A stretch of 64,000 nt of DNA. Source: Anthoceros angustus. Lineage: Eukaryota; Plantae; Anthocerotophyta. The first letter of the stretch is position 1. Each line of letters starts with the position of its first letter. Positions 15,400 to 42,632 of the stretch are shown one piece after another. Location of the stretch: the NCBI GenBank assembly GCA_010909165.1, contig VJWM01000182.1:1-64000 (forward strand), read 5' to 3'. The position numbers were made by a program, and so were the translations under genes. The notes under the pieces were generated by a model. It was not told the origin of the DNA. It saw only the letters and a list, made by a program, of their open reading frames with translations, and made no database searches.

Positions 15400-17905
15400 C
15401 TGCAGGCAAATGGTCGACAAAAGTAACTGGCATAAAACAATGTCATTGCTGCAGTCTAGGTGGAAAGGTCTTCCATTCCGACTTGAGTCTCTGGAGGGCA
15501 TTGCCCATGCACGCTATCCATAACCACTTCCAGTCCTTTCATTTGAGTACGCTATGTGTCTTCAATGTTGTGATTTTCCTCCATCGTAATATCTTTGTCA
15601 GTATGGTCTTCTTCCGCGCCACTGGTGGAGTCCTTTTGTGGCCAAATAGCGTCTAGGGTCTGCTACCCATCATCCAGGATGTCATCAGTACTCTCCTTCC
15701 TTCCGTTAGCTGCCAAACGAACAACCTACGACTGAGACCCATCCTTTTGAGACAAACTCACCTCTTTTGCCCAGAGCTAGGTCAGGCCCTCACAATGTGG
15801 TTTATGATTTAACTCCTCTTCTGCGTCTAGCAGCACTTCGTAGCCATGAACCCTCTAAGGAATAAACTCTGAGCACCTCTTATCTACCTCGATTGCAATG
15901 CAGTTGTGTCCACAGAGCAAGGCTGCCAAAGTCGTTGACCCACTCCCACCATAAGCATCCAGAATCCGATCCCCCTCCTTCGAGAAGCTTTTGATGAGCC
16001 TCGTCATCAAAGCCAATGGCCTTTGATAAGCACAGACCACCAGCTTGTCCAATGATGTGTAAAGCAACTTCTTCACCATTGTAGGATGCCCGATGACTGC
16101 CCTCCCATTGTTAAAAGACCCATGGATGTTACTGGGGATCATGAAAACTTTGATCTTCTTGCTATCCGATGTTAAACCCCACCCTATAGTCACGTACTCC
16201 GTAGTGTCGTTCCTACCCAAGTCATTGTGTATATTTGTTTTGCATAATGAATGTCTCATCTCCGGGACAGTTAAGCCACAATACACATGGGCTTCGATCC
16301 ATTGAAAACATGCCTTTCCTAGTGATATGTCCGCTAGATGCCTCATGGCTGCGTAGGTGTGGTTCCCTTCTAGAGCGCCCATAACGTACTTCTTCGCCCT
16401 AAACCTTTTCCAATCAAGTTGTTCAATGTCCTCACACTCTGCAGGGTCAATCACACATAAAAGTGGAAGGACTCCTTCTTCGATCCTTCCTTTTGCAATG
16501 ACTCGGGCAAGATAGTTTGCCCCCGCCTCATCAACTTTCCGGATCTGGGCATCAGGGGTCAGGAAGGCAGCAGGCCTCAAATTTTTGAGTTTCACCAAAA
16601 TAGTTTCGAGCACCACTTTTTTGGAACGAGCAGACTGAAGTACATTCTTAAGGTAGTCTTCATCCATATGCGACACCTCCAATCGCTCATTGTCAGTGGC
16701 CACGTGAACAATTTGAATCCCATTGCTGTCTGAAGGTCTGATTGCGCGCTTCCCTTTCAAGCGCCTCTGGGTATCTGCCGGATCCACTCTTGGAGTTCTC
16801 GTTTTCCTGCCGCCTGCCTTTGCAGAGGTCCTACGTTTTTTGCGGTTGGGCGAGGCCTCCCCGCCATCACCGTCAGAGTCAAGAGAGGTGCCGGCATGTC
16901 GGTGCCCCTCTACTTTGCATTCGCTGTCGTGGAGGGCGCCGACTTCTTTATCCCCTTCCCCAACATCAGGCCTTCCACCAGCCTCACGGCCCACTTGCAC
17001 ACCGCCCATTGTGCTAGGGTGGCACCTGCCCTAGGATGAATCCCCATGGGCGCCGACATGTCGGCACCCTCCCTCTTCAACCCCCACACCATATCCAGGC
17101 ATAAACCACCCAACCTGTGGGGTGCCCAAAGTATCTATGTCGTGAAGGGCCTATAGGGCGCCAACATGCCGGCGCCCTTCTTCCTCCACAAGGTTATAAG
17201 GCAACGTACAAACATCCATGGACGCTCCCGGCAGATTCAACTCGTCCTCCACCATTCCATCCTCCTCTTCCTGTTTAGATGCCCCATCATCTGAATGCCC
17301 TAAGACATCTAAGACGGGCCCATCCTCTTCCTCTGAAGGCCTAAACTCGTTGTCTTCTTCATCTTCCACAAATGCCAGCTCTCCCTAAGCAAAAGCTTCA
17401 AGTCCTTAGCGAGTACTCCTGTATGACATTTCTCGCTTGTGAATTTTGATAGATTGTGCTATTGCTACACACAAGACCCTGTACACAACTCTCTCATCCT
17501 CATCATAGAATTTCCAGCATCACCATTGCTTAGCACAAGACATGAATGTTTCTGACTTACGTTCTGAAAGCACAAGCGAAGACATCACAGGTTACCGTAA
17601 AGGACACTTACAGTCTGTGCAAGCATTACCTCACGAAATTTCAGAGATAAGTCCCTGGGCTCCCACTTATGGGCATTGAAGTTAGACACACTCGAACAAA
17701 TGCTATCTTTATTATGGCCGGGAAGAGTGTCAAATTCATCTGACCTTTCTATGCGAGCACACGCAACTCACGGTGCCCTCGTGCTCCAAGGCAAGTGTTG
17801 CCCACACAACCCAACCAGCCCTCACTCTTTGGTTCAGCAGAGCTCCCGCGTGTCCATCATGACAGACTCCTCATATGAATAAGATGAGGGGATTGGGTTC
17901 CCAGC
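15400..17905 (-). pseudogene. Transposon-derived ParB/Srx-like + beta-class N6A/N4C DNA methyltransferase gene (core ORF 15855-17009), internally deleted
   Basis: ParB-like: QIRKVDE..PLLCVID..ALEGNHTYAAMRHL..AHVYCGL. MTase motifs X-I-II: CAYQRPLALMTRLIKSFSKEGDRILDAYGGSGSTTLAALLCGHNCIAIEVD. A basic NLS-like NRKKRR is present. The same frame continues past in-frame TAG stops. 5' exons are homologous to 59847-60690. Confidence 0.85.
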
Positions 17906-21820: not shown

Positions 21821-22536
21821 CCTGCAGCCATCACACACCTTGTCGTTAGTCACGCTTCGCCCACGTGACCTTCAATTCTCCCTAGCCTCTGCCTTCGTGC
21901 AATATCGCCGCTCTCCCGCTCCAAATCGCCCTGCCCCATGCTCTTGCCACTGGCGTGTTGGTGCTGTGTGTGTTCACGCACACGGGCTTTATGCACCGCT
22001 TGCCCTAATGGCATGGTTGTTACTTTTTAGAAGCCGTATCCACGGCATGCCATTCATCCGGCCCCCCAGCCATTTCATCTAGTCTCTGGATGGCACATTG
22101 GTGACAATACCACTCACCATCCGGTATCATCTTGAGCGGAGGCCGTAAGCAGAACACATGGTAGCCTTTGTTTTATTTGTCACACAGTATCATCAGCTCT
22201 GGGTCCGTGATGTGACCACAAAATTCGCAAGGTAAGTCGATCGGTGGCTTCCAAGCCTGTGGTTGTGTCCTCATATCTAGGTTGGGCAGGTGACATGGTG
22301 CCAAATGACGCATGTGCTCCTTGCACCATCGTCCATCTTGTCCTTCCAGCTCAATGACTCCCTGCTCACCCACACTCACCAGACATAAAATCAGACGTCC
22401 GGTACTCACATCCAGCGTGCTTGAAGGCCGATGCTGTAAGTACACAAAGTCCCCTACTTCAAACTTCCTCGCCTTGGGTTTCCATGAGCCACCTCGCGTA
22501 AAGGCATACCGGAGTTGATCTCGGTGTTGTGCAATT

Positions 22537-22568
22537 AACAGCGTCTGGGTAGAAAGGGGTTTCTCCAG
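22537..22568 (+). repeat. Terminal inverted repeat (MTase-side end) of the Sola1-like transposon, preceded by AATT target site (22533-22536)
   Basis: AACAGCGTCTGGGTAGAAAGGGGTTTCTCCAG versus TACAGCGTCTGGGTAAAAAGGGGTTTCTCCGG at 35979. Both abut AATT within the same gypsy integrase codons. Confidence 0.85.
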
Positions 22569-22949
22569 TTACCCCTTCTTGCACATGTCTGAGAATGGAC
22601 CCTTTTTTGCACCATGCAAAATCTGAACACAAATCGGCTGATACATAGCAAACCCTAGTGTTTTCCATGTGAAAGCGATTGCTTTCACATAATATGTGTT
22701 ATTGAAATGCAGCAATAATGACAAGTAACCGTAGTCCACCTTGTGGACTTGTGTATATCGGAAAAAATATTACATTTAGATGCGCAAACATGCGCCACCT
22801 CTACAAACCTAATTTATGCTCACATTCTCAATCGGGATAGATGACGATGGGGAGGGAGCAGGTCCAGGGGAGGAGTATGAGGAAGAGCGTGAGAAGAAGG
22901 CACGTGCCATGAGTTATATGAAGAAACAACGCTCTGGACTTCATAGACC

Positions 22950-23886
22950 TTCCGCCTGCCACCTCCTTCGCGAAAAAAACCGGATGCCCTCGCTTATGGG
23001 GTTTGGTTGTCAATTCTTCCTCATCATTGGGGAAAACCTCATGCCACATTGTCAGATTGATCAATGAAAATGGTGCTCCTTTGCTCACGATGGTGGCGAT
23101 GCAATTGCGGCCTTCGATAATCTTTGCCAATATACCTCACTTGTTCCGGGCACCCATCTATTACCCACTCCCCTCTCTCCGTGAAAAGGTCATAAAGCAG
23201 AACAATAAGCCCTATTGGTTTCTGGTAAGGGCATACAACATGTCCATCGTTTGACACATTGAAGTTTCTTCACGTGGATGTCTAATGAAAGCGGGCATGG
23301 CTCCAATCTCCTAGCACCTTTGTTGCCAGCGCCTTTGCATTTCCTCATATCTTGTGGGGTGGACACCATACCCTCTTGTAAAGTACTCGCAGTTCTCATA
23401 TAGACCTTCCTCCGCAATCAAATTATCTTTCTCCCACACCATGGTATACACACCTCCGCGCTCATACCATTTACGCAGCGCATTCTGAACATCCTGCATC
23501 TGATCTGGACCATGCATAAATATCACTCGAAAGGTTTTGCAGTCCGTTACTGTCATGAACCCATCCATGATTTTTTCATAATCTTCGGATGTCATCTCCT
23601 GATCCCAGGATTCTGCCACATTCCCTCTTGGCAAATCAACAACCAGCAGTTTGTATTCCCGCTTTCCAAGATAGCCGCCATTTTGAATATCACCGATAAT
23701 TACTTGGTACCTGACTTTCTGTTTGCTTTTTGGGACTTGGAACATGGATAGTTTAGCATCATTGTCCTCCTCTGCTAATTATCTCTGAAGGTCTTCCACC
23801 CTCTTCCAGTTCCTTGCTGCGTTGATATGCTCTTTGAAGCTATCTGGAATGACCTTTTCTTTGTACTCTTCTGCCTGCTTCAGAGT
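22950..23886 (-). CDS. Beta-class N6A/N4C DNA methyltransferase domain (3' exon of the transposon cargo gene), frameshifted as assembled
   Basis: Acceptor TTTTTTGGTGCTCGCAG at 23887. Motifs in order: QVIIGDI, YKLLVVDLPRG..WD (motif IV-like), VWEKDN, ENCEYF, VCPYQKPIGLIVLLYDLFTERGEWVIDGC.GT (X-I), GRNCIA. The tail EEELTTKPH matches EEELNHKPH of the 15.8-kb copy. Confidence 0.8.
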
Positions 23887-23949
23887 CTGCGAGCACCAAA
23901 AAAGCATTGTGAAATTTGACGTTGATGGGGGATGCGCAAACAAGTGAGG

Positions 23950-24560
23950 CAATGGCATGGAATTGGCAGTAGAAGTCATTCGGATCTTGCGGGAAGTGTA
24001 GGCGACTTACCCATCCTGTTGGTATGTGCTCGAAAATGTGTGTGGTGCTTTCGACAAACGTGAGTATGTCAGGAAACAATATGGGCAACTCAGAAGCTGG
24101 CTGGGGGAGGAGTTTATTTGGATGCCGTGCAGACCGGCTCATACGTGCATCGGGTGCGAAGCTTCTGGACAAATGTGAGCAGTGTGACAGCCCTAAGGCA
24201 TCATCGGCAGTTGACGACACTAGAACAGCGCTATGTAGATGACATCTTGGGTCCAGGATGACGTTCACAACAAGTGCGCAAGGGAGATAAGTTACCCCAC
24301 TACCCAGTGAACGTGGTGGGAAAACCAAGAAGGGCATGGCCCACGCTCGTCAAGACCGTGCAGTCCTATGCGTTTAGGAAAGGAGGAGAAGGCATGGTGC
24401 TAAAAACGAAAGGAAATGAAGTAGGGGAGCCTACAATAACAGAGCAAGAACGGGCCATGGGATTTGGCACATGTGGCACTCACACGGCTGGTGTGTCTGA
24501 ATCATTCCGGTGCAGGTTGATCGGGCAAGCCTTCGACATGACTTTATGCGATGGCTGGTA
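23950..24560 (+). CDS. DNMT3-like C5-cytosine methyltransferase domain (C-terminal half) within gypsy pol
   Basis: EVIRILRE..WYVLENV (motif VI), YLDAVQTGSYVHRVRSFWTN (VIII), EPTITEQERAMGF..GT..GVSESFRCRLIGQAFD..MRWL (IX-X). It runs into the RT-containing ORF. Motifs I and IV lie beyond the breakpoint at ~23915. Confidence 0.8.
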
Positions 24561-27244
24561 AATGCAGGCTTGGCCATAGAGATGGCCGTGTATCGAAAGG
24601 ATGGCAAGGGGCATCTGCTGATATGTGACGAAGAAGGTGAACCTACACCTGCACCCGAGAAACAAGAACATGCCGCCAATACGGCAGTGTCTGTTTCTTC
24701 GTCGCGGGGGGAAGACCATGAGAATCCGATCGATGATTGGCAAATCTGTGAAGACTTGCAACCGGCTGAGCAGCAAAAGATCCGGGACATGTTACATAGA
24801 AATCGAGGCACCTTGCGTTCAGTTGGGGCCGAGTTGGGGCGGTATGATCGCATCAAGTTCAAGATTACCACTACCACCAATGAACCTGTGTTTCGAAGAA
24901 GACACAAATTGAGTCCCATGGAATGGGATATCGTAGACAAGCGGTGCAAGGAGCTGGCTGCGGTTGGGCTGATTAGGAAGTCGACCTCGCAATATGCTGC
25001 AGCTACCGTGTTGCCACTCAAGAAGGATGAACATGGGGAGTGGAAGGATAGGAGAATGTGTGGAGATTATCGAGCCTTGAATGAAATAACGCCCATGGAA
25101 CGGTATCCCATGCCCACTCCTGACGAGATCTTTGACGCCATTGGAGAGGCCAAATACTTCACCACACTTGATTTTCGATCTGGGTTCAATCAGATTGTGA
25201 TTGAAGAGAAGGACAAGTGCAAGACAGCGTTTTGGGGCAAAGAGCAGCTGTGGGAGTGGGAAACCATGCCATTCGGTTTGAAGAATGCATCCATATATTT
25301 TCAACGAGTGGCTGACTTGGAACTGCAAGGACTATCAGTTGTCAAGTGCTACATTGATGACATTCTGGTGTTCAGCAATAGTCTGGAGGAACACCTTGAG
25401 CACTTAGAAGTCGCTGCTGACGGCCTCTGGTGAAGACCCATCCCGAAATGTAAGTTCGTCTGAGGAGATAGAGTACTTGGGGCATAAGATTGTACCGGGG
25501 GGAGTGCTGCCACAGTTGGCCAAAGTGCAGGTGGTGAGTCTCATGCCTAGACCTAAAGATGTAGGCATACGAGGCGTTCTTGGGGTTGGTGAACTACTAT
25601 CATCGGTTTATAAGAAACATGAGCAGAACCTACAAGCCGTTGTACGAGTTACTCAAGAAGGAAGCCCATTGGCACTGGGAGCAGGAGCAGGAGCAAGCGT
25701 GGTAGGAGTTAAAGGAGCAATTGGCAGAGAGGCCAATGCTTAAAAGGCCCAATTTCGACAAGCCCTTCGTCTTGTATACGGATTGGAGTGCAGTAGGCAT
25801 TGGAGCCGTGCTTGCACAAGTAGATGAGGAAGGGAAAGAGCGGGTCGTCGCCTACGCGAGCAGATCTAACAACACTGCGGAGGCCAATTACTCGTCTTAT
25901 GAAGGAGAGTGTCTAGCTGCTGTGTAGGCGGTTCTGCATTTCAGAGTATACCTATTTGGCCGAAGCTTTCAGTTAGTCACGGATCATCAGCCACTACACT
26001 GGCTGATGACCAACATGAAGCTGAGTGGGAAGCTTGCTAGATGGGTTTTGCTGCTGTCAGAATACGACATGCAGATTGTACACCGGGCAGGAAAGGTGCA
26101 TCTCAATGCCGATGGGCTCAGTAGGAGCCCGATGTGTGGGGCAGGAGACACCACTGGGGCCAGACAAGACTTCGGGTCTACTCAGCACGTGCCCAGTGTG
26201 TACCTGACATTGATGTCCATAGAACCAGGCAGCGAACAGCAGCCATCAGAAGGTGGTTGAGACATATGGAAACTCGAGCATGCCATTCAGTTGTTGAGGG
26301 ATGGGCGTGTAGCTGGTTTGGACGCAATGGCTCTCCAGAAGCTGCAGCGAAGGATCGCTTGCTATACGTACAAGGACGGTAAGGTGTTTGTGGTTGATCG
26401 ACGGGTGAGCAAGGAGGTGCCACCCGTGGAAGAAAGAAAACCATTAGTGACCAAGGTGCATAAGGCCATTGGGCACTTTGGTGTCAGCGAGCACCACATG
26501 TTGAAGAATGCATATACGGTCGGTATGTATGCGATGTGGAGCAGTGGTATCGCGGCGCATGCATGCGATGCGATGAAGGCAAGGTTTACTTGACCATGAT
26601 GTGGTGTTACATTCTTTGCCTATCGAGGATTGTTTTTTGAGATGGTCCGTTGATCTGATGCCTGAACTCCTAGCAACAAGACAGGGCAACAAACACTGCA
26701 TGTTGATGATATAGCACTTTTCAAAGTGGGTGGAGTTGGCTTTTCTTCCGGTCAGAAGCTCCAAGTATCTTGCCGGGCATTCCTGATGTGTTCTTAGCGG
26801 TATGGGGAGAAATGCGGTCTTGTGGACCAAGTCAACAAGTTTCGTGGTGAATTCCAAGCATTGTTGGACCGAAGTCTGATAGACCACCGCCACACCTCCC
26901 GGGATCATCCTCAAGCTGACAGGTTGGCTGAACGGTTAGTACAAACTTTCAAGGATTCTCTTCGCAAGTACTGCACTGAGGTTGAACCCGATTGCTGGGA
27001 TGAGTTATTGCCATATGTGGCATTGGGATATAGGATCGGTGTCTGGGCAGCCTTTGAACCAACTTATATATTACATCATGTTTGGACGGAATCTTGTGAT
27101 GTCAAATATTGTGGCGGACACCTATTTTTCAGCATGTCTCCATGCACAAGTAGATTGGGCACAGTCGAGGAGAGTGCCTCTTGGAGTTGCAAAACCGAGC
27201 CAATTTGTTTGATAATCCCAATGGCAATGGACAACTTGGCAATT
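24510..27244 (+). mobile_element. Ty3/gypsy pol: RT-RNaseH-integrase, ending at the transposon insertion site
   Basis: RRMCGDYRALN, YFTTLDFRSGFNQI, MPFGLKNA, CYIDDILVFS, LYTDWSAVGIGAVL, YSSYEGECLA, GHFG, RWSVDL, HPQADRLAERLVQT; ends PMAMDNLAI. Confidence 0.93.
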
Positions 27245-27619
27245 CTGATCTGGGTAAAGGGGTTTCTCCGGCAATAAGGGTTTAGGCAAAAGTCCGTCTT
27301 TTCTTAAAAAGCATGAGGATGTTTTCTGGTTTTTAGCATGTGCACTCGGCTTGGAATAGAGTGATCAATTCCAGGGTGCCCCGTTCTGCATGTTTTGGCC
27401 GTGTCTCCATGCACAAGTAAATGAGCCATTTAAGAAGGTGTAAATGAAATGAAATATGTGTTTTGATAGGTTTTCAGCATGTCTCCATGTCATCAAAGCG
27501 TGGGGTTTGCTCGGCTTGCCTCCGGATATGAGTCGTGCTCCGTTCCTGCGGAGAATTATATAGAATCATGAAGCTTGCAAATCAAGCGCGCAATGCAAAA
27601 TCGCTATTTTTCAAATATA

Positions 27620-30600
27620 GGTGCTACTCCTTTGGTGGTGTCTGAAGATCATCTCTTCCATCTACCATTAGGGATCGCAATTATAGAGGACAAACCCGGC
27701 CTTTCTGCTTTTTTTCCTTCTAGTCCGTCGGACGCTGGTTGGGAGCTCTCTTCAAACATGCCTTCTGTAGGATCTCCAATACCTCGTCCGTGTCCATCTA
27801 CAATTGGTCGAACTAATGCTTTGGCGGCATGGACTCGCGGATCATCCTCAACTCGAACATGGTCTTGGGTTTTAATATCATTGACCATGTATTATAAACG
27901 TTTCTCCTCGCCTCAAGGTGGTGGTGGGCCCTTGTCGTTATTCGACTTCGCACTTTGCATATGGTGGAGTTCAAATAGCTTGGTCTTTATGAGCTCTTGG
28001 GTTCTCACATAAGCGTGCTCTCTCGCGTCGGGGCAAATCCATATGAAAGAATAAAGGTCTCCGACACAAAGGCGATCGAGATGCTTGGACGCTTCCGCCT
28101 TTGGCGTAGAGCATTCTTGTCCACTTAGTTGGGTGGCAAAATCTCTTGGTATATAACGACCTTCAAATGCATTGTTGTTCTCCGTTACCCACCATTGCCG
28201 CGACGGTCGTTCGTCACGAAATCTAGGTTCTCCACCTCGCAACCCAAAAGGCTGTTTTTCGCCTCACATGCAGCGGCAATCATATGGCCCTGGATCTCGA
28301 CCACATCTCCGTCTAATACTTTCCTTGCCCTTGCTCCCTTGGATATAATTACCAAGGTACATATGCAGGCCCTCGTTCCTTGATCTGGACCGGAGAAGCG
28401 ACATCGGAAGGATGGTATCGCTATTTCGCTCTACCGATTGTACCCTTTGCCATGGTATCTCTAGCTCATGATCGGCTCCACTGGAGATTTTTTCGTCGAG
28501 CTTGTGACTCCCAAAAGCCGTTCCACCATACCTTGTCGGCCTTTGGTACTACGCATCGGCTCTTGAGTGCCTTCGATGCCCTCAATGATCTATGAGGTTG
28601 GGATGCGAGCTTTCCCATGTACTTAGTGTAGTGCAGGTGCCCACGGATGGGGTTTACGGGATGAGGCGAAGAAACTCAAGTCCCTCGTCGGGTTCCCAGT
28701 GAGGCGTGGTTGATAATATTGCATGACACTACAACCATTACCCGCTGCGCGTTCTTCTCGTGATTTTAAATTGATGTTGATAATATGGTTGTTCAAGCGT
28801 CCAAGCTGCAGCATCCGTGCCCCTTTTACCCATCGAAGGCCATACATACCTTGAAATCCATAACGGTAATCACTTTCCATACGGATTTGGGGTATCGCTT
28901 GTTCAATAAGCGTCATCGAGTTAGTAGCGACATGCCTTCTTATGCCTTAGACTTTTTGAAAAACAAGAGAACATTTGATCCAGAATCATGGGTGTGCCCG
29001 AGAAGGAATCAACTTTAACCTTCGAATACCGCTTCTTCACCAGCATACTCGGATATGCAAACAACGGCATATTCTTGTTCTCCAGCGGTGTTGTCAATTG
29101 AAGGTAAAGGTCTTTGGCAAGACACGTCATAGTTGAGTATAATATCTTGAATAATATGTATCGTCGAGTTGGCATCATTGCGGATGTTCGGATAGTTGAC
29201 ATACACCCCGTCTTCATCACATTATTGTATACCAAACAACCAACAACATGAACACGAATTAACCCATCGAAATCTTTTGGAGGCCCGTGTCGGGAGCTCT
29301 GTCTTGCTCTGGTCCATTCCATCTATGGCAATTCAATATATCGGTGTTGTCCCGCCAGATGCTTCGCTAGCTTGATCGCTCTTGTTTTAAGCGAACTCGA
29401 CCGCGATTCGCTCTCAAAGCGTTACGCCAAGGAACCATGATGTGAGATTCTTATATTGCATAGAGCATAAGTGCGCAGATTGGGGCTCCACTCGCGAGGC
29501 GCGCACTTTGCGTCTGCGCAGCGCCGATCGGCATGTCGCGCGCGCGCAAGCGCGGCCTTGCGCTGCACGCTGCGGCCGGCGCCTTTGGCGGGGCACTCCT
29601 CTGCATGCCGTCGTGCACTCCCTCTGTCTTGGCCAAGTCGCGCACTCCCTCGCTGCGCACACTTGAGTCCTTACACTTGGACCTACCTTGATCTCGTCGA
29701 TCGTGTCCCGATATGTCTTGATAGTTTTGCGTACACATTTGGAAGCGGCACGGGATCTTGACATTTGGGAAGTGCATCTTCGCATAAAATGAGAGTGAGA
29801 TCGTTTGACATCCGTGCCACCTCCGTTTGTAGTCTTGGAAGATCTCTCCCTTTATAGGGTCGGCGGGTTGAACAACGCGTTGGCATGCGCTCTGCGGATA
29901 TCTTGAAAAATTGGTCCATCAAGCAATGCATTCTAGCACATGGTCTTGCTTTGGACGGGCTTGGACCTTCATTCTGACCATGGTGTGTTAGGACAACCAC
30001 ATTGTCGGATCGTGATACCTTCTCCATCAATGCAGAACACCTTGCGAAAACTTGAACACAACATTGCGTTCGAGGTCTCGGAGGTAGGTTTGATCACCTT
30101 TGGGATAGACTTGAACTACCTCAAGCGGACTTTCCAAATCTGATTCTTGTTGCTCTCGACCCATTCCCAAGCGATACCGGGTTTTCTATATGTTTCCTTC
30201 CAACTTTCGGCAAACATCCTTTGCTACAACAATCACGACCATGCACTCTGAACACTCATTGGAGCACAACCTTTGAGCACGCTTCCGTCTGGGATATTGC
30301 CGGCGTTTTGAGGCGGCACGCATGAAAGTCTCAAACAAAGCTTTGGGATTGAAGTTTGCTTAAAGTCCTCCAAAATCATCGTGATGTAGCAATCTTCGAT
30401 GGAAAATGGAAACGTCTTGGTGTCGCGAGAATGGCCGCGCCGTCAAAACCTCTTCTTTGGCTGTGAGCCCGTCACAGCCACTTCCATGTTAGGGATCTTG
30501 TCCAAGGTTAGGCCTTGGAGAAGAACTTCGTCATTCTCTAATGGAGTCGTATCCATGACCATTACCCGTTTTGGAATAAGCATCGGTATCAGTTTTCATA

Positions 30601-30750
30601 AAAGCGACACTGTCGATGTCCGATACTCTGCCCTCTTGAGGCGATTTGAAACTCCTCTACATTCAGCGTCGAATGCCAGCTTTCTCCCGATTACGCCGTA
30701 TTTGGAGGAGTCACTGCATTGCGGATATCTTTGGATCAAAGTATCCACAT
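27620..30750 (-). pseudogene. Sola-like DDD transposase, frameshifted as assembled
   Basis: CCSKGCLP, FCIGWRRY, WMDQFFKISAERMPN, (I)DGMDQSKT, RVHVVGCLV, LYLQLDNTA.ENKN, FL.GHTHD..DQMFSCFS; reconstructed across frames and against the second copy. Confidence 0.8.
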
Positions 30751-30900
30751 GGTGTGAGGCGAGAATGTGAAAAGGATAGTGGCCCGTAATCTAAACGTTC
30801 AAATTAGGGGACTTCATGGTTGGACATGATGGCGGCCGCCACAAAATAAACTCTCATAGCGGCAACCCGGCCGGGTGAAGTTTAGTAAACCCTAGGTTCT

Positions 30901-32185
30901 TGTGGGCGACTTTTCTTAACCCGGGCGCGCGATCCGTGTCGTTGTAGAGGATTCGTTCCACAATGGACTCGTGCTTGATACACGAGCTCTACAACCCGCT
31001 GAGCGGACTTCATCATGTTTGGTCCGGCTCCACAACCAAGTTTATGCCCCTCCACAACTCGTCGGACGAGGCCATGCACCGGACCTTCCACAAACCGCCG
31101 GGTTTCTCCGGTACCAGAGCGAGGTTTAGCGGCGCTTTCCTCGAAATCTCGTACTCTAGCGCCCGGCGCTCCTCAACTCTGCCCAGCCACAACTCACCTC
31201 GTCACCACGCCCGCCGCCCTCCTGCCATCCCGGCTAGTAGTCACAACACCAACACGCCCGATGTATTCGCACCGGGCCTTTGCCCCGTGCTTCACATTGA
31301 AGAATGTGGTGCTTTGCAACTCCACAACCTGGTTCAGCCTCGAGGGGATGGTTTCCACCGGAGTCACCCCAGCTAATCCCTTGGGCCTTCACGTTTTGCG
31401 GAAGCTTGAGCTGCAACCCCACGGCCTCGTTCCGGCTGACCTCGAGTTATCTCACACGGAAAATCACCCTCGACACCTCCTCGTAGCAGTCGAGTCCAGT
31501 CCGCACGCATCAGCGTGTTGGCGGAGCTCGTCACGAAACTCTCAACACATCCCTCTACCACCAATTAATCACCTTGCGGTGGCCTTGAACCTCCGCTCCT
31601 CGAACACGGAAGGCGAGAGCACACTGAGTGCACGATGAGCCACAAGGGATAGTCGCGGTCTAGGCGCCTATATGCCCACACACCTAATCTAACCCGCTAT
31701 GTATGTACCCTAACCACAGGTACGTAGTAACTAGCCAAAAGCTCATCATTCCATCGGACTTCGTCCACCAGTTGCTTCCCATGCGGCGATCCGTTCGAAC
31801 CATACCATCGGACTAACCCGCGGCGGACCACATCCGGACTAAGCCACTGACGAGACTCCATCGGACTAAACGCCCGGCCGGTTTCTCCGTCGAGCCTCGG
31901 CGGACTTACTCCGTCGAGCATGGCTCGGACTTACTCGTCGAGCGCGCTCGGCGGACTTACTCCGTCGAGCCGCTCGGCGGACTTACTCCGTCGAGCGCCG
32001 CTCGGCGGACCACTCGATCGGACCCGCCCGACGGACCTAGGGTCTAGGGATTGCACACTAAGTGCAATCGGCCAAAAGCCAACCTTATTGGCTAACTCCT
32101 CCTATCCCTCTTAGCAGTGGTGACGAAAAAAGCGAAACAAGACTAAAACAAGTCGCCGAGTACGGACGCCAGTTGGCACTCCACA
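30901..32185. mobile_element. Solo-LTR-like insertion, ~1.3 kb
   Basis: Termini TGTGG...CCACA. Shares the terminal GCGACTTT..GATCCGTGTCGTTGTAG with the LTR at 42633. Contains ~25-bp CTCGGCGGACTTACTCCGTCGAGC repeats at 31890-32010. No clear TSD. Confidence 0.6.
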
Positions 32186-32509
32186 TATCATAACCCTTGG
32201 TTAAAAACTTCGAGTTGGTAGTGTAGTCAATTAACCATGGTTGCATCTTAGCAGGGCATCCTAAAAGCAGGAAGAGCCGTTTTTAGGGTTAAACTGAGTT
32301 ATGGGCGCGGTGCGCGGTTGATGTTTCCTCGGCGTTTGCGGTCCAATTGCGGGATTATGCAGGTTGTGTGGCTGCTAAAGGCAATCGATTGGGCCTTGGG
32401 AGGCGCGACCAGTTCCAGTGAGCAGGCGGATCCACGGGCGCCTCGGAATTTCGATGGGGATCCGGTGATCGATATGCTCTTAGGAATTTTTCTGCGAGAG
32501 GATTGTAGA

Positions 32510-33000
32510 GCCCATGTGGGCGAGGATGCCATGGGCGCGCTGGCGGGCTGAGACGCCATGGAGGCGCGCGAGGGCACGCTAAGGCGCCGGATGGGCTTGC
32601 TTGTGGGCGCCGGATGGGCTTGCTTGGCGCCGGATGGGCTTGCTTGTGGGCGCCCACATGGGCTTGTGAGGCGCCCATGGGAAACTGCTTGTGGGCGCCC
32701 ACATGGGCTGTGGGCGCCCATGGGAGCAGGCGCCCATGGGCTTGTGGGCGCCCACATGGGCTTGTGGGCGCCCACATGTTTCTGTGGGCGCCACATGGGC
32801 TTGCTTGTGAGCCCACAGGCTTCTTGTGAGGCCACATGGGCTTGTGGGCGCCCACATGGGCTTCTTGGGCGCCCATGGGCTTGTGGGCGCCCACGTGGGC
32901 TGCTGTGGGCGCCCATGGGGCCTTGTGGGCGCCCACATGGGCTCTTGTGGGCGCCCACATGGGCTTGTGGGCGCCCACAGCAAACTTTAACATGGCGCCA
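32510..33000. repeat. GC-rich palindromic minisatellite (~20-bp unit ATGGGCTTGTGGGCGCCCAC)
   Basis: About 20 imperfect units; the core TGTGGGCGCCCACA is self-complementary. Confidence 0.9.
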
Positions 33001-33065
33001 CAAGCACAAGGCGTGCCCTCGAACGCCTACGCCAGGCTTCACGCAGGCGCTTCGCCGGTTCTTGT

Positions 33066-33818
33066 CACTACTAGGAAAGCGGGTCTTTACAGCGGAAATT
33101 ACAGCGGCATTACTCGACTTTCGTGGAAGTCGGTTGTAAAACCCTCAAGTAATAAACACACCTTAGTAATGTCGGTAGTAAATATTCATACTAATTATCG
33201 ATGGCTATACATGTTATATCACGGTATTGTCTGGTATCGTTATGCGACTTAGCGGATGGTCGTATATTGGTTAACCTTTAGCGCCTTTACTACGGACAAT
33301 ACTACGATGCACCTAGCGCGTTTTACAACTTCACTAACCATAGTTAATATATTATAGTTAAGTAATCAAGGTTACTTGACTATGGTTTACTAACTAGGAT
33401 TAAGTAGCTGTTGTTACATAACCCCATCTTGATTGGTGTTATCACGGTTAATTAAACTCAATGGTCTCTGTAAAGGCGTACCTTGTTGTAAATGTCGGGT
33501 TGTCAAGGTGCGGTCCTTTGCGGACTTTTAAACCTTGATGTAAAGGGGGTCGTTGTAAATGTTAAACTTTACAACGACCCCTGTGTAAGGAACCAGTTGT
33601 AAAGGGTTAGTAAAGAGCTATCCCTTTACAGCGACCCTGTTGTAATGGAACCTCGTTGTAAAGAAATGGGTTTAGGATTAGGGTCCTTTGTAAAAGTATT
33701 GTGTGTGAACTAAAACCCGATTCGATGTAAATCTCGGAGTCTCTTGTATAAACATCCACCTCGGCACCCAAAACATCACCTCGACCCCCACTAGGACCGA
33801 CCGCCACAATCCATCTTG
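33066..33818 (+). mobile_element. CACTA-type transposon end with subterminal repeats
   Basis: Begins CACTACTAGGAAAG. Many (GTC)GTTGTAAA/TTTACAAC motifs in both orientations, including the hairpin GGGGTCGTTGTAAA-N8-TTTACAACGACCCC at 33546-33581. Confidence 0.7.
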
Positions 33819-34624
33819 TGTGGCGCGACTTTGTTGTGGTAGGCGCGCCTGATCCGTGTCGTTGTAGTAAGTCAGTTCAGAGAATGATAGCTCCGTTTGC
33901 AGCGTTAGGCCGATCCCTTGCGTCCGGCTCAACTTTAACACACATCGTCGTTTCGTCTAACTACTCCGCGTTCGAGCAGGCCGGTGTGGCCAAGCGTTTA
34001 AGGACCGTTTGCGTCCGTATCGTTCGCCGTCACTCGTCCTTTAGTCCGTTCCTCTCATCACTCTCACTCGCTCATCAACCTTGGAAAGAGCATGAAGTAG
34101 CTACGGTCCGGACCTCCTCCGTTGCTCAGCGGGCCTCTCGTCGGGCTCTGCGCCCTCCGGAGTTCCTCCGGCTCACACGTTCGGTCCGCTCGATCTTTGG
34201 GCGGCTGCTGGGCGAACACGGGTCCCATCGCTCTTCCTGCACACACCACCACGTTAGGGTCCGTCACGGGACCTTGATCGATCTCTCGGGGCATCGTGCA
34301 CCTTTCGATGACTCGGGACTCACGTTAGCGAAGACACACAGGTGCAAGCAGCGGCATCAACACCAAGAAGATGATTTATTCAGCCTCGGCCCTCTTATAC
34401 TCGCCCAAGTCGGCGTCTTTATTACACCCTATTATGGTGGCCAGCTCGATGCCCTAATCGACCGCCTACCATCCTATTCCTCCCCTCCTATCTCCTTTCG
34501 GTGGTGGGCACAGGAAGGTCACAGGTTCCGTCTCGGATTGGTGGTCAATCTCCCGTCGGCAGTTGCGGCGCGCAATCGGATGATCGCGGGACCCCTTCCT
34601 CTTCCGGAATCACAGCGGGTTGGG
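33819..34624 (-). mobile_element. Truncated copy of the LTR at 42633-46821
   Basis: Appears identical to 42633-43438 (offset 8814). Confidence 0.8.
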
Positions 34625-35978
34625 AAGGAAAGAGCGGGTTCGCCTACGGCGAGATCTAACAACACTGAGGCCAATTACTCGTCTTATGAAGGAGAGTGTC
34701 TAGCAGTGTAGGCGGTTACGCATTTGAGTATACCTATTTGGCGAAGCTTTCGATTAGTCACGGATCATCGCCACTACAGGGATGACCAACATGAGTGGGA
34801 AGCTTGCTAGATGGGTTTTCTTTTGCGCCGAATCGACATGCAGTGTACCCGGCGGGGAAAGGTGCATCTCAATGGATGGGCTCGTAGGAGCCCGATGTGT
34901 GGCGAGGAGACACCACTGGGCGAGACAAGACTTGGTCTACTCGACGCGTGCCCGGTGTGTACCTGACATTGATGTCCATAGAACCGGTGACGGCGACCAT
35001 CGGAAGGTGGTTGAGACATATGGAACTCGAGCATGCCATTCGATTGTTGAGGGATGGGCGTGTAGCTGGTTTGGACGCAATGGCTCTCCAGAAGCTGCAG
35101 CGAAGGATCGCTTGCTATACGTACAAGGACGGTAAGGTGTTTGTGGTTGATCGACGGGTGAGCAAGGAGGTGCCACCCGTGGAAGAAAGAAAACCATTAG
35201 TGACCAAGGTGCATAAGACGCTGGGGCACTTTGGTGTCAAGCGAACGCACCACATGTTGAAGAATGCATACTTCTGGTCAGGTATGTATGCTGATGTGGA
35301 GCAGGTGGTATCGCGGTGCGCTGCATGCGATGCAGTGAAGGCAAGGTTTAACAGCCATGATGTGGTGTTACATTTGCTGCCTATCAGGGGATTGTTTTTC
35401 AGATGGTCCGTTGATCTGATGCCTGAACTCCTAGCAACAAGACAGGGCAACAAACACTGCATGTTGATGATATAGCACTTTTCAAAGTGGGTGGAGTTGG
35501 CTTTTCTTCCGGTCAGAAGCTCCAAGTATGCATTCCTGATGTGTTCTTAGCGGTATGGGGCTCTTGGGGTCTTGTGGACCAAGTCAACAAGTTTCGTGGT
35601 GAATTCCAAGCATTGTTGGACCGGTCGATAGACCACCACACCTCCGGATCATCCTCAGTCGAGGTTGGTGAGCAGTTAGTACAAACTTTCAAGGATTCTC
35701 TTCGCAAGTACTGCACTGAGGTTGAACCCGATTGCTGGGATGAGTTATTGCCATATGTGGCATTGGGATATAGGATCAGTGTGCAAGCGGCACTGGGCAA
35801 CTTCAGCCTATATTACATCATGTTTGGACGGAATGCTGTGATGTCAAATATTGTGGCGGACACCTATTTTCAACCGGTAGATTGGGCACAGAGTCCAGGA
35901 GAGTGCCTCTTGGAGTTGCAAAACCGAGCCAAGCTGTTTCAGCGAGTAATCCCAATGGCAATGGACAACTTGGCAATT
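34625..35978 (+). mobile_element. Duplicated gypsy RNaseH-integrase segment
   Basis: HKTLGHFGVKRT..YFWSGMYADV..CAAC (HHCC zinc finger), FFRWSVDL; ends RVIPMAMDNLAI. Confidence 0.9.
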
Positions 35979-36010
35979 TACAGCGTCTGGGTAAAAAGGG
36001 GTTTCTCCGG
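35979..36010 (+). repeat. Terminal inverted repeat (transposase-side end) after AATT (35975-35978)
   Basis: TACAGCGTCTGGGTAAAAAGGGGTTTCTCCGG, 29/32 identical to 22537-22568. Confidence 0.85.
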
Positions 36011-36399
36011 CAATAAGGGGTTTAGGCAAAAAGTCCGTCTTTTCTAAGGCAAAAACGCCGCGGCGGGATGTTTTTCTGGTTTTTAGCATGTGCACTCGGC
36101 TTGGAATAGAGTGATCAATTCGGTGTGCCCGTTACATGTTTTGGCGCTACCGTGTCTCCATGCACAAGTAAATGGGCCATTTAAGAAGGTGTAAATGAAA
36201 TGAAATATGTGTTTTGATAGGTTTTTCAGCATGTCTCCATGTCATACAAAACGTGGGGTTTGCTCGGCCGGCTTGCCTCCAGATATGAGTGCGCGCACAA
36301 GTGTGCGCACTCACGTTCCTCATGCGGAGAATTATATAGAATCATAGAAGCTTGCAAATCAACTGCAATGCAAAATCGCTAGTTTTCACATATAGGTGC

Positions 36400-39300
36400 T
36401 ACTCACTGGCTGGTGTACAGCAAGATCATCTCTTCCATCTACCAATAGGGATCGCAATTATAGAGGACAAACATGGCCTTTGCCGTTTTTCCTTCTAGTC
36501 CGTCGACGCTGGTTGGGAGCTCTCTTCAAACATGCCTTCAAAAACCCCGACTGGGTTAGGATCTCCAATACCTCGTCCGCGTGTCCATCTCGCAATTGGT
36601 CGAACTAATGCTTTGGCCGGCATGGACTCGCGGATCATCCTCAACTCGAACATGGTCTTGGGTTTTAATATCATTGACCATGACTGTATTATGAAACGTT
36701 TCTCCTCGCGCCTCAAGGTGGTGGGCTGGGCCCTTGTCGTTATTCCCAGCTTCCGCACTTTGCATATGGTGGAGTTCAAATAGCTTGGTCTTTATGAGCT
36801 CTTGGGTTCTCACATACAGCATGCTCTCTCGCGTCAGGGCAAATCCATATGAAAGAATAAAGGTCTCCGCCAGCACAAGGCGATCGAGATGCTTCGGACG
36901 CTTCCGCCTTTGACGTAGAGCATTCTTGTCCGCACAGTTGGGTGGCAAAATCTCTTGGTATATGACCTTCAAATGCATTGTTGTTCTCGTTACCCACCAT
37001 TGCGACCGAATCAGTTCGTCGGAAATCTAGGTTCTCCACCTCGCAACCCAAAAGGCTGTTTTGGTCATCCGCCTCATGCACGGCAATCATATGGCCTGGA
37101 TCTCGGCACATCTCTCTAACTGCACTTCCCTTGCCCTTGCTCGCCGGGATATAATTACCAAGGTACATTGCCTTGGCCCTCGTTGCATCGGACCGAGAGA
37201 AGCGAACATCCGCACAAGGATGGTATCGCTCGCTCCTCTACCCGATTGTACCTTGCCATGGTATCTCTAGCTCATGGTCACGGATTTGAGATTTAAATCG
37301 GGCTTGTGACTCCCAAAAGCCGTTCCACCATACCTTATCGGCCTAGTGCTTGCATCGGCTCTTGAGTGCCTTCGATGCCATCCAATGATCTATGAGGGTT
37401 GGGATCTGGAGCTTTCCCATGTGTAGTGCACAGAGGTGCCCACGGATGGGGTTTCGGGATGAGGCGAAGAAACTCAAGTCCCTCGTCGGGTTCCCATGAG
37501 CGTGGTTGATAAATATTTGCGCGCACTACAACCATTGCCCGCCTGCGCGTTCTTCTCGTGATTTTAAATTGATGTTGATAAATGGTTGTTCAAGCGTCCA
37601 AGCATCCGTGCCCCCTTTTACCCATCGAAGGCCATACATACCCGGAAATCCGCAACACCGGTAATCACTTTCACTTACGGATTTGGGGTATCGCTTGTTC
37701 AATAAGCGTCATCGAGTTAGTAGCGACATTGCCTTCTTATGTCTTAGACTTTTGAAAAACAAGAGAACATTTGATCCACAGAATCATGGGTGTGCGACAA
37801 GAAGGAATCCAACTTTAACCTTCTCGAATACCGCTTCTTCACCAGCATACTCGGATATGCAAACAACGCATATTCTTGTTCTCTCGTGTTGTCAATTGAA
37901 GGTAAAAGGTCTTTGGCAAGACACCGTCATAGTTGAGTATAATATCTTGAATAATATGTATCTTCAGGTTGGCATCATTGCGGATGTTCGGATAGTTGAC
38001 ATACACCTTCGTCTTCATCACATTATTGTATACCAAACAACCAACAACATGAACACGAATTAACCCATCGGCGAAATCTTTTGGAGGCCTTGTAAAGTGC
38101 GGAAGCTCTGTCTTGCTCTGGTCCATTCTATCTATGGCAATTCCAATATATTGGCTCGGTTGTCCCGCGCACTTCAGCCGATGCTTCGCTAGCTTCAGTC
38201 GCTCTTGTTTTAAGAACTACATGCGACGATTCGCTCTCAAACGCGTTACGCCAAGGAACCATGACGATGTGAGATTCTTATATTGCATAGGAGATAAGGC
38301 GCAGATTGGGGCTCTTTTGCGCGAGGCGCGCCTCAGTGCGCGCCGTCTGGCCCGCCTGCGCAAGCACTTGGCGTGGCGCAAGCTTGGCGCACTTGGCTGT
38401 GCCAGCGCGTGCGCGCGCTGCGCCTGCACGGGCCTCCTGCACGCAAGTGCGTGCACTCCTCCTCGCGCGCTGTGCGCGCACTCCCTCGCTTGCGCGCAGT
38501 CCTTACACTTGGACCTACCTTGATCTCGTCGATCATGTCAGATGGCCGTCTTGATAGTTTTCTGTACACATTTGGCTTGGGATCTTGACATTCGGAAGTG
38601 CATCTTCCATAATGCAAAATGAGAGTGAGATCGTTTGACATCCCGTGCCACCTCCCGTTTGTAGTCTTGGAAGATCTCTCCCTTCGTATAGGAGTCAGGC
38701 AGGTTGAACACTGCAACGTTAGGCATGCGCTCTGCAGATATCTTGAAAAATTGGTCCATCCAAGCAATGCATTCTAGCACATGGTCTTGTTTTGGACGGG
38801 CTTGGACCTTCAATTCCGATGACCATGGTGTGTTCCGGACAACCCCGTTCGTCAGATCGTGATACCTTCTCCATCCAATGCAGAACACCTTGCGAAAACT
38901 TCGAACACAACATTGCGTTCCGGTCTCCGGACAGGTTTGTTGTGTCGGGATAGAGTTGAACTACCTCAAGCGGACTTTCCAAATCTGATTCTGTTGCTCT
39001 CGACCCATTCCCAAGCGATACCTAGGTTTTCTATATGTTTCCTTCCAACTTTCGGCAAACATCCTTTGCTACAACAATGCGACGACCATGCACTCTGAAC
39101 ACGCTCATTGGGAACACAACCTTTGCACGCTTCCGTCTGGGATATTGCCGGCGTTTTTGAGGGCTGGCTGCATGAAAGTCTCGCAAAGCTTTGGGATTGA
39201 AGTTTGCTTAAAGTCCTCCAAAACCGTCATGTGATGTCGCAATCTTCGATGGAAATGGAAGCGTCTTTATGTGATGGAGAATAAGCGCCGTGTCGAGCAT

Positions 39301-39600
39301 CTTCTTTGGGATGCCACGTCACAGCCACTTCCTTGTTATCTTGTCAAAGATTAGGCCTTGGGAAGAAGAACTTTCTTCTCTAATGGAGTCGTATCCATGA
39401 CCATTACCCGTTTTGGAATAGAAGCATCGAGTAGTTTCCATAACACTGTGTGATGTCTCGATATGCCACTCTCGGAGGCGATTTGAAACCGCTCTCTGTC
39501 CTCTACATTCCGCGTCGCAATCGAATGCCATGTGCTTCCCCGATTACGCCATATGTTTGGGGAGGTCAGCATTGCGATATCTTTGGATCAAAGGTATCCA
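36400..39600 (-). pseudogene. Sola-like DDD transposase, duplicate copy
   Basis: MDQSKTELPHFTRPPKDFADGLIRVHVVGCLVYNN..NDANL..LPKTFYLQL..RENKN; WMDQFFKISAERMPNVAVFNLPDSYTKGEIFQDY. Confidence 0.8.
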
Positions 39601-39753
39601 CAAGGTGTGAGGCGAGAATGTGAAAAGGATAGTGGCCCCGTAATCCGACGTTCAAATTAGGGGACTTCATGGTTGGACATGATGGCGGCCGCCACAAAAT
39701 AAACTCATAGCGGCAACCCGGCCTTGGGTGAAGTTTAGTAAACCCTAGGTTCT

Positions 39754-41050
39754 TGTGGCGCGACTTTTCTTTGACGGCCCGGGCGGCGCACGATCCGTGT
39801 CGTTGTAGTAAAGGATTCGTTCCACAGAATGGACTCGTGCTTATACACTTTGAGCTCTACAACCTATCGCTGAAGACTTCATCATGTTTGGTCCGTGCTC
39901 CACAACCAAGTTTATGCCCCTCCACAACTCGTCGGACAGCCTGACCACGGACCTTCCCACAAACCCGCGGGTTTCTCGATACCAGGAGCAGTTTAGCGGC
40001 GCTTTCCTCGTGATCTCGTACTCTGGCGGCGCTCCTCAACTTCTGCCCAGCCACAACTCCACCTCGCCTGCCGCGCCCTCCTCCATCCCGGCTAGTAGTC
40101 ACAGCACACGCGCCCGATGTATTCACCGGGCCGCCTTTGCCCGTGCTTCACATTCGTAAGCTTTGCAGCTTGCAACTCCACAACCTGGTTCAGCGGCCTC
40201 GAGGATGGTTTCCACCGGGTCACCCCAGCCCCTAATCCCTTGGTGCCTTCACGTTTTGCGGGGAAGTGGCTTGCTAACCCCAGACCTCCGTTCCAGCCTC
40301 GAGTTAGTCTCACACGGAAAATCACCCTCGAGCACCTCCTCGGCGCAGTCCGACCCGGTCGCACCCATCAGCGTGTTGGCGGAGCTCGTCACGAAACTCT
40401 CAACACATCCCTCTACCACCAATTAATCACCTTGCGGTGGCCCAGAACACCTCCTCCTCGAACCACGGAAGGCGAGAGCACAGTGCGAAGATGGTGCGGG
40501 ATAGTCGCGGTCTAGGCGCCTAGGCCTCCTGCTTCCCACACCTAATCTAACCCGCTATGTATGTACCCTAACCACAGGTGGTAGTAAGCCAAAGGCGTAG
40601 CTCATCATTCCATCGGACTTCGTCCACCAGTAGCTTCCCGCCATACGGCGGATCCGTTCCAGACCATGCCATAGGACTAACCCGCGGCCGGAACACATCC
40701 GGACTAAAGCCACTGAGAACTCCATCCAGACTAAGCCGCCCGGAGTTTTCCGTCGAAAGGCTCGGCGGACTTACTCCGTCGAGCGCCTTCGGCGGACTTA
40801 CTCGTCGAGCGCGCTCGGCGGACTTACTCCGTCGAGCAGCTCGGCGGACTTACTCCGTCGACGCCGCTCGGCGGACCACTCGATCGGACCCCGCCCAGAC
40901 GGACCTAGGGTCTAGGGATTGCACACTAAGTGCAATCGGCCAAAGCCACCTTATTGGCTAACTCCTCCCTATCCCTCTTAGTGTGACGAAAAAAGCGAAA
41001 CAAGACTAAAACAAGTCGCCGAGAATGCGGACGCCAGTTGGCACTCCATA
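39754..41050. mobile_element. Duplicate of the solo-LTR-like insertion
   Basis: TGTGGCGCGACTTT...GGCACTCCATA; colinear with 30901-32185. Confidence 0.6.
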
Positions 41051-41379
41051 TACTTAACCCTTGGTTAAAAACTTCGAGTTAGTGCTTAGTCAATTAACCA
41101 TGGTTGCATCTTAGCAGGGCATCCTAAAAACAGGAAGCGTTTTTAGGGTTAAGGCTCGAGTTATGGGGCGCGGTCGCGGTTTTGATGTTCCTCGGCGTTT
41201 GCGGGTCCAATTGCGGCAGTATGGCGTAGGTGTGTGCTAAATCGATTGGGCCGGGGAGGCGCGACGGTCCGGTGAGCAGGCGATCCACGAGCGCCTCGGA
41301 ATTTCGATGAGATCCGGTGATCGATATGCTCTTAGGAATTTTTCTGCGAGAGGATTGTAGCCCATGAGGCGGGCACGAG

Positions 41380-41815
41380 ATGCCCATGGGCGCGCTGGTG
41401 GCGGGCTGAGACGCCCATGGGCGCACGCTAACCGCGCCGGATGGGCTTGCTTGTGGCGCCCAGATGGGCTTGCTTGTGGGCGCCGGATGGGCTTGCTGTG
41501 AGCGCCCATGGGCCGTGGGCGCCCACATGGAGCTTTGTGAGGCGCCCACATGGGCTGTGGGCGCCCACATGGGAAGCGCCCATGGGCTTGTGAACATGGG
41601 CTTGTGGGCGCCCACATGGGCGGGTGAGCCCACAGGCTTTAACTTGTGAGGCCCATGGGCTTGTGGGCGCCCACATGGGCAGCGTGGGCGCACATGGGCT
41701 TTCGTGAGCCACATGGGCGCCCACGTGGGCTTGCTGTGGGCGCCCATGGGGCTTGTGGGGGCGCCCACATGGGCTTGTGGGCGCCCACATGGAGACGCTT
41801 GTGGGCGCCCACAAG
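41380..41815. repeat. Duplicate palindromic minisatellite
   Basis: Same TGTGGGCGCCCACATGGGCT units as at 32510-33000. Confidence 0.9.
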
Positions 41816-41881
41816 TGAGACACAGGCGTGCCCTCGAGACGCGCCTACGCCAGGCTTCACGGTGGCGCTTCATGTTCTTGT

Positions 41882-42632
41882 CACTACTAGGAAAGCGGGT
41901 CTTTTACAGCGGAAATTACAGCGGCAATTACTACGACTTTAAGTGTCGTTGTAAAACCCTCAAGTATAAACACACCTTAGTAATATCGGTAGTAAATATT
42001 CATACTAATTATCGATGGCTATACATATTATATCACGGTATTGTCTGGTATCGTTATGCGACTTAGCGGATGGTCGTATATTGGTTAACCTTTAGCGCCT
42101 TTACTACGGACAATACTACGATGCACCTAGCGCGTTTTACAACTTCACTAACCATAGTTAATATATTATAGTTAAGTAATCAAGGTTACTTGACTATGGT
42201 TTACTAACTAGGATTAAGTAGCTGTTGTTACATAACCCCATCTTGATTGGTGTTATCACGGTTAATTAAACTCAATGGTCTCTGTAAAGGCGTACCTTGT
42301 TGTAAATGTCGGGTTGTCAAGGTGCGGTCCTTTGCGGACTTTTAAACCTTGATGTAAAGGGGGTCGTTGTAAATGTTAAACTTTACAACGACCCCTGTGT
42401 AAGGAACCAGTTGTAAAGGGTTAGTAAAGAGCTATCCCTTTACAGCGACCCTGTTGTAATGGAACCTCGTTGTAAAGAAATGGGTTTAGGATTAGGGTCC
42501 TTTGTAAAAGTATTGTGTGTGAACTAAAACCCGATTCGATGTAAATCTCGGAGTCTCTTGTATAAACATCCACCTCGGCACCCAAAACATCACCTCGACC
42601 CCCACTAGGACCGACCGCCACAATCCATCTTG
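41882..42632 (+). mobile_element. Duplicate CACTA-type end
   Basis: CACTACTAGGAAAG at 41882; near-identical to 33066-33818. Confidence 0.7.

Follow-up and report, generated by a model that had tools for sequence, protein, structure and literature searches.

A defective Sola1-like transposon in Anthoceros angustus and intact relatives carrying a head-to-head ParB-like/methyltransferase gene

Contig VJWM01000182.1 of the hornwort Anthoceros angustus (assembly GCA_010909165.1) raises the question of whether a plant DNA transposon can carry its own amino-DNA-methyltransferase (MTase). The window analyzed here is positions 1 to 64,000 of this contig, and within it positions 22537–33065 had been proposed, from the sequence alone, to hold a Sola1-like element with a divergently transcribed ParB-MTase gene (the original prediction). 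We conclude that the region contains a defective member of a Sola1 subclade whose ParB-like/MTase cargo would mark the element's own DNA, and we put the probability of this explanation as a whole at about 0.6. The anatomy of the element as reconstructed is very probably correct, and the catalytic self-marking step is a close call on which we lean slightly towards doubt.

The ends of the element are defined by a 36-nt repeat pair (22531–22566 and 35973–36008; 94% identity, E=2.5e-8) that contains a 30-bp terminus, and a third, degraded copy begins at 27245. AATT is found immediately 5' of all three termini (22533–36, 27241–44 and 35975–78). The termini have the same orientation in the assembly and are direct repeats there, becoming terminal inverted repeats (TIRs) only once an inversion is undone. 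Undoing the inversion is warranted because the two flanks are halves of one Gypsy integrase: on the plus strand, 5' of 27245/35979, the integrase breaks off at IPMAMDNLAI, and it picks up again at IAQHRDQL on the minus-strand flank of 22537. An uninterrupted Gypsy copy at ~1470–1520, reading IMPMAMENLAIAQHRDQL, confirms the join. Together, the AATT and the Gypsy continuity show that both ends belong to one insertion with a 4-bp target-site duplication (TSD). A single element thus integrated at an AATT site within the Gypsy integrase, and an inversion broken near 23930 later parted its ends; the inversion is either real or made by the assembly. The Gypsy sequence at 23946–27240 is the insertion target and lies outside the Sola element. 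The matching termini, the shared AATT target and the layout of the original prediction (TIR, leftward transposase, rightward MTase gene, TIR) all hold, the last after the inversion is undone.

The termini at 27245 and 35979 represent the same element end, as they lie in the two copies of an indel-rich 8.8-kb tandem repeat. These copies (25828–34624 and 34623–43438) share 87% identity overall (stretches of 75–89%) with 361 gaps, and their last 1.1 kb is 100% identical. The repeat has the appearance of uncorrected long-read error and is possibly a false duplication of the assembly; given this error pattern, frameshifts within it are not confidently readable as biological decay.

Inward of 27245/35979, on the minus strand, is a transposase that matches Pfam DUF7869 (E=3e-9 and 9e-10) and the hidden Markov model (HMM) of its own family (E=3e-34). 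It has the motifs DMDQSK, ENKN and HTH..DQ; D(GMDQ), D(N...ENKN) and GHTHEDID are invariant across the family transposases. The motifs, the DUF7869 matches, the TIRs and the 4-bp TSD bear out its assignment to Sola1. The transposase profile gave no sequence match in PDB. The Sola1-1_Ec32 transposase of Ectocarpus has the same motifs as far as it is shown, in a by-eye comparison at motif level, and its own best match is Sola1-1_PPa (PMC12477816 supplement). A second, divergent Sola1/DUF7869 transposase remnant is present at 55400–58500 (minus strand); no cargo gene was detected with it, and no TIR pair was found around it.

Next to the other end is the 3' half of a beta-class amino-MTase gene with motifs IV (DLPR, ~23630), X (PYQKP, ~23230) and a remnant of I (~23150), in the order conserved throughout the family. 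A stop at 23779–81 interrupts it, as do two or more frameshifts (near 23300 and 23150), and it was compared piece by piece. Against a profile built without window sequences, the pieces 23314–23778 and 23042–23269 gave E=2.8e-14 and 2.6e-11, respectively, and comparison of the pieces with homologs gave E=2e-14. The exon belongs to a beta-class MTase family, as predicted; the exon itself (23042–23886) has no match to Pfam N6_N4_Mtase. No 5' half of the cargo gene is present in 22537–33065, and the ParB-like domain is missing with it: the ParB-like profile found no match there. We rejected the segment from 30.7 to 33.06 kb as its 5' exon, as it has no homology to the family. A ParB-like half is found in the window only in a separate paralog at 15858–17030, which matches the ParB-like profile (E=1.8e-18) and Pfam N6_N4_Mtase (3.9e-12); the ParB part of the original prediction therefore derives from this neighboring paralog, and the predicted ParB-MTase fusion applies to the family and not to this copy. 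No TIR pair was found around the paralog, which sits just upstream of a RIC1-like gene (~9–14 kb). A word-indexed homolog search with locus 15855–17009 was blank, which is uninformative given its length and word limits, and a full HMMER scan recovered the MTase family where the word-indexed search did not.

The top matches of the full scan were in Chara braunii, Riccia sorocarpa and JGI/Logan contigs, and three complete elements with a transposase and a head-to-head ParB-like/MTase gene between TIRs were identified. A Chara-like JGI metagenome contig (L002, 8915 bp) has TIRs at 20–47 and 8844–8871, a minus-strand transposase and a plus-strand MTase of 789 aa with DFPY; its flanks are short and lack a matching TSD. 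The Riccia sorocarpa element (L006, 2883–13813) has the same layout, a TAGA TSD and an intact DIPY exon that was skipped by the annotation. The element of the chlorophyte Cymbomonas (L010) was chosen from the transposase side, ignoring the MTase, and so provides a reverse test of the linkage; it has 35-nt TIRs (4862–4896 and 13854–13888), an AGGG TSD and a family MTase gene head-to-head inside. These elements and the window ends all begin AACA, and a divergently transcribed MTase cargo in Sola1-like elements is thereby established beyond the window. The predicted 4-bp length of the TSD is borne out at the window, Riccia and Cymbomonas insertions. The TSDs are not confined to AWWT, which AATT fits and TAGA and AGGG do not. 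A scan of metagenomes with P0005 gave no loci, and a metagenome TIR scan gave a lone 22-nt match inside a bacterial open reading frame (ORF), which we dismissed as chance. Adjoining the first Riccia element is a second DUF7869 element (L006:18543–21752) that has a separate repeated palindrome (core CATGAGACTCATG); a partner gene, if there is one, would fall outside the examined DNA.

Three recent Sola1 elements of the oyster Saccostrea echinata (99% identical, >26 kb, with differing flanks) had been picked as an expected negative control. They have an AACAC end and a head-to-head gene of 703 aa, an exon of which matches the ParB-like profile at 1.6e-17 (L012:119–709, L014:84–674). There is no MTase in the oyster DNA examined, and any MTase part would fall beyond that stretch. 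In Chara braunii locus L005 (BFEA01000570.1), two separate cargo-gene copies that lie 25 kb from each other have been annotated as a single 1825-aa protein, CBR_g41648, and rearranged fragments of a third copy are nearby.

From chlorophytes to land plants, the family MTases have kept the Asp of motif IV, YQKP and the S-adenosylmethionine-binding D-x-x-x-G-S-G. Chara, Riccia and the JGI contigs have an intact D-x-P-Y, which is also seen in prokaryotic-type matches such as P0016 and P0035. The (T)SPPY motif IV of N4-cytosine (N4C) MTases of the DN4MT1/N4CMT type does not occur in the family. All 15 family rows group in a single clade, separate from the prokaryotic-type matches (Shimodaira–Hasegawa-like approximate likelihood ratio test, 99) in a quick tree in which four rows are about half filled or less and placement within the clade is weak. 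An AlphaFold2 model of P0005 (predicted local distance difference test score, pLDDT, 78) predicts a beta-class fold, with CcrM, M1.HpyAVI, M.BceJIV and M.RsrI as best matches (E 1e-11 to 1e-8) and N4CMT and PvuII lower (ranks 21–37). The ranking of HMMs against PDB agrees in placing N6-adenine (N6A) enzymes above N4C enzymes. D or N in motif IV favors N6A and S favors N4C activity, albeit with exceptions.

The N-terminal domain has an invariant R and an invariant G-x-H-x-x-x-A, the latter aligning weakly (E ~1) to the sulfiredoxin active-site motif. In a whole-model Foldseek search, matches to ParB/Spo0J proteins of phages had E values from 4e-9 to 5e-3, to which the MTase part may contribute, and a single-sequence model of the domain reached a pLDDT of only 36. 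Its identification as ParB-like draws on this motif pattern, on published work, and on similarity to sulfiredoxin and to phage ParB that is weak in both cases. Repeated palindromes occur in several of the elements: the palindrome of the window array (Table 1) was counted 7 times, the Cymbomonas element has 19 copies, partly just upstream of the cargo gene, Riccia ~10 and oyster 12. Each palindrome is element-specific, and no repeated palindromes were found in control regions. The simplest reading is that the arrays may serve as a parS-like address for the N-terminal domain.

Table 1. Features of the Anthoceros angustus window related to the Sola1-like element.
Feature	Position	Strand	Remarks
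Cargo-gene paralog: ParB-like domain and MTase motifs X, I	15858..17030	-	internal deletion removed motif IV
Host Gypsy 3' part: integrase end, PHD-like finger	22100..22532	-	
AATT target-site duplication, MTase-side end	22533..22536	.	
Terminal inverted repeat, MTase-side end, begins AACA	22537..22566	+	now inverted relative to original position
Beta-class amino-MTase gene, 3' half	23042..23886	-	motifs IV, X, I; broken by stop and frameshifts
Inferred inversion breakpoint, MTase gene to Gypsy 5' part	23889..23945	.	probable intron acceptor ~23889
Host Gypsy 5' part: C5-DNMT-like remnant, reverse transcriptase (RT), RNase H, integrase	23946..27240	+	
AATT target-site duplication, transposase-side end	27241..27244	.	
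Terminal inverted repeat, transposase-side end, error-ridden copy	27245..27270	+	
Sola1/DUF7869 DDD transposase, many frameshifts	27570..30800	-	core ~28924-29332; outer limits approximate
26-bp tandem array, intergenic	31885..32010	.	
~17 copies of 20-bp unit with palindrome GTGGGCGCCCAC	32583..32979	.	candidate parS-like binding array
CACTA-type terminus truncating Sola element	33066..33078	+	
Second copy of 25828-34624	34623..43438	+	contains TIR 35979-36008 and better-read transposase pieces 37747-39226

Several other features of the window were noted. The C5-DNMT-like remnant of the interrupted Gypsy element (23946–24560, plus strand) lies upstream of the RT and has WYVLENV and RSFWTN motifs, with no Pfam match; together with the PHD-like finger after the integrase, it gives the element a resemblance to the Gypsy-DNMT3 elements reported in streptophytes, and a Gypsy with such a remnant would be in keeping with a seedless streptophyte. 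CACTA-type termini are present at 33066 and 41882, with a 297-aa ORF (33818–34711; no Pfam match) following, and the other end of this CACTA-type element was not found within the window. An intact 212-aa ORF without a Pfam match (20453–21091, minus strand) lies downstream of the Gypsy 3' part. An intronless gene at 4938–7190 (minus strand) encodes a 750-aa PPR-DYW protein with KPAKA/HAEKLA motifs, which we take to place it in the DYW:KP clade of hornworts and ferns as a candidate U-to-C RNA editing factor.

We propose that autonomous members of a Sola1 subclade with AAC termini and 4-bp TSDs carry, head-to-head with the transposase, a second gene whose product begins with a ParB/sulfiredoxin-like domain and continues through a helical linker into a beta-class amino-MTase. 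After the window copy had inserted at AATT, it was disrupted by the inversion, real or made by the assembly, and by a CACTA insertion, and the 5' half of its cargo gene was lost. The ParB-like domain may bind the palindrome arrays of its own element and tether the MTase in cis, and the MTase would put an exocyclic methyl mark on that element, with N6-methyladenine (6mA) more likely than N4-methylcytosine (4mC) in view of the D-type motif IV. Such a mark could keep the shared divergent promoter active or time transposase access to the ends, and would work against host silencing by 5-methylcytosine (5mC). Both binding and methylation are inferred. Self-modification is also proposed in PMC12477816, and the hypothesis has been put forward for Plavaka PAG3 as well (bioRxiv 10.1101/2025.02.11.637652).

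A number of observations weigh against this explanation. Relative to the canonical (D/N/S)PP(Y/F/W), motif IV lacks the first Pro in the whole family (D-x-P-Y), and the aromatic residue is replaced in the clade of the window copy, with DLPR there and in P0003 and P0017, and DIPH in P0031; Cymbomonas has DCNY. The N-terminal domain has no match to Pfam or NCBIfam ParB families, including Pfam ParBc, and no clear repeated palindrome was seen in L002 in the same scan as the others. In Chara braunii, three MTase loci have no transposase within 10 kb and two transposases have no MTase within 10 kb, showing that the linkage of the two genes is not obligatory. Dam enzymes borne by transposable elements (TEs) have also been reported to show no activity when tested in E. 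coli (bioRxiv 10.64898/2026.05.21.726589).

In view of the DLPR and DCNY variants, the cargo may be non-catalytic in some lineages, that of the window copy among them. The cargo could then be a DNA-binding accessory, acting in anti-silencing or as a transpososome helper in the manner of VANC proteins or inactive DIRS MTases, and the MTase fold would, at least in the DLPR clade, be retained to bind DNA or protein. DLPR recurs in independent sequences and does not stem from read error, a ParB-like exon is present in the oyster partner gene without an N6_N4_Mtase match in the examined DNA, and DIRS MTase domains are thought to be inactive (PMC4738411). We nonetheless regard a non-catalytic cargo as unlikely, given that the motif IV Asp and motifs X and I are conserved from chlorophytes to land plants, and that D-x-P-Y is intact in several lineages. 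An enzyme akin to Marchantia DN4MT1 or rotifer N4CMT could instead write 4mC at CG sites and thereby block host 5mC deposition. Pfam N6_N4_Mtase does not distinguish N6A from N4C enzymes, N4CMT and PvuII are within the structural matches, and 4mC is present in a liverwort; the D-type motif IV, the absence of SPPY and the higher rank of N6A enzymes by both fold and HMM make this quite improbable.

It could also be that the MTase exon is passively captured DNA, as in Pack-type elements, or lies beside the TIR only through chimeric assembly. In favor of this, sequence quality in the region is that of raw reads, the 8.8-kb duplication is likely false, other DNA separates the exon from the transposase, and the gene lacks its 5' half. 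However, the head-to-head layout with long open frames recurs inside the TIR/TSD-bounded Riccia and Cymbomonas elements and the JGI contig, and the TSD and Gypsy continuity bind both window ends to one insertion. We therefore consider passive capture or chimerism highly improbable here, and largely refuted for the family as a whole. Returning to the self-marking explanation, its broadest form, in which an ancient AAC-terminus Sola1 subclade co-inherited a ParB-like accessory gene in lineages as far apart as brown algae, chlorophytes, charophytes, land plants and molluscs, with intact members writing 6mA or 4mC on their own DNA via parS-like arrays, is a tentative extension that we think somewhat unlikely.

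The architecture had been thought new to Sola elements, and this does not stand. A 2025 report (PMC12477816) describes for Ectocarpus Sola1-1_Ec32 a gene that encodes a ParB-like domain and an N4C/N6A methyltransferase on the other strand from the transposase, and it includes the self-modification idea. Its supplement gives AACCG termini and a 4-bp TSD not restricted to AWWT. A literature search that covered few subscription papers did not find the layout described for land plants or other streptophytes. The present analysis adds members from land plants and green algae, the oyster relative with its ParB-like partner gene, and the family-specific palindrome arrays. A one-paragraph remark on a single brown-algal family has become a conserved transposon subclade whose range extends to land plants, with full-length copies verified by their TSDs, conserved termini and a predicted intact D-I-P-Y enzyme in a liverwort. 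Abundant genomic 6mA is reported to be lacking in streptophytes, so that these elements would offer a concrete, testable source of local 6mA or 4mC and a candidate counter-silencing system; if the broadest form of the explanation is true, land plants would gain a transposon-encoded non-5mC mark that counters silencing. The window copy is a poor reagent for such tests, to which the Riccia and Chara-like copies are better suited.

Among known systems, Sola1-1_Ec32 shares the transposase motif series, the AAC termini, the 4-bp TSD and the opposite-strand ParB-like/MTase gene, a layout found in L002, L006 and L010 and, by reconstruction and without the ParB half, in the window. It differs in coming from a brown alga and in its size (21.5 kb with 282-bp TIRs, whereas the green-lineage elements are 9–11 kb with ~30-bp TIRs), and its 1104-aa cargo is likened to the green-lineage cargo by description only. 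Sola1 as defined by Bao et al. (2009; Sola1-1_PPa subgroup) likewise has a DDD transposase, short TIRs and a 4-bp TSD, and AATT fits its AWWT, although the present family adds a second gene and has TSDs (TAGA, AGGG) outside AWWT. Plavaka of Bostrychia, with the accessory genes PAG2/PAG3, is also a DNA transposon with an N6A methylase and a ParB-like domain, and inverted-repeat arrays adjoin its ParB gene (bioRxiv 10.1101/2025.02.11.637652); it belongs to another superfamily, and its fusions are of ParB with a 2-oxoglutarate oxygenase and of the methylase with a SET domain.

CcrM, M.RsrI, M1.HpyAVI and the phage ParB-MTase fusions share the fold and the motif order IV-X-I, but they are ≤20% identical to the present family, which has D-x-P-Y/R and forms a distinct eukaryotic clade. 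Marchantia DN4MT1 and bdelloid N4CMT, which the original prediction had linked to the cargo, are also prokaryotic-type amino-MTases in eukaryotes; they are domesticated host enzymes with (T)SPPY, in contrast to the D-type motif IV of the cargo family, and the link is one of analogy only. The DAM-carrying retrotransposons resemble the present elements in having a prokaryotic-type amino-MTase in a TE, although they belong to the retroelements, have NPP-type motifs and reportedly do not occur in streptophytes, and the MTase-bearing viral Mariner elements similarly carry prokaryotic-type amino-MTases within TEs.

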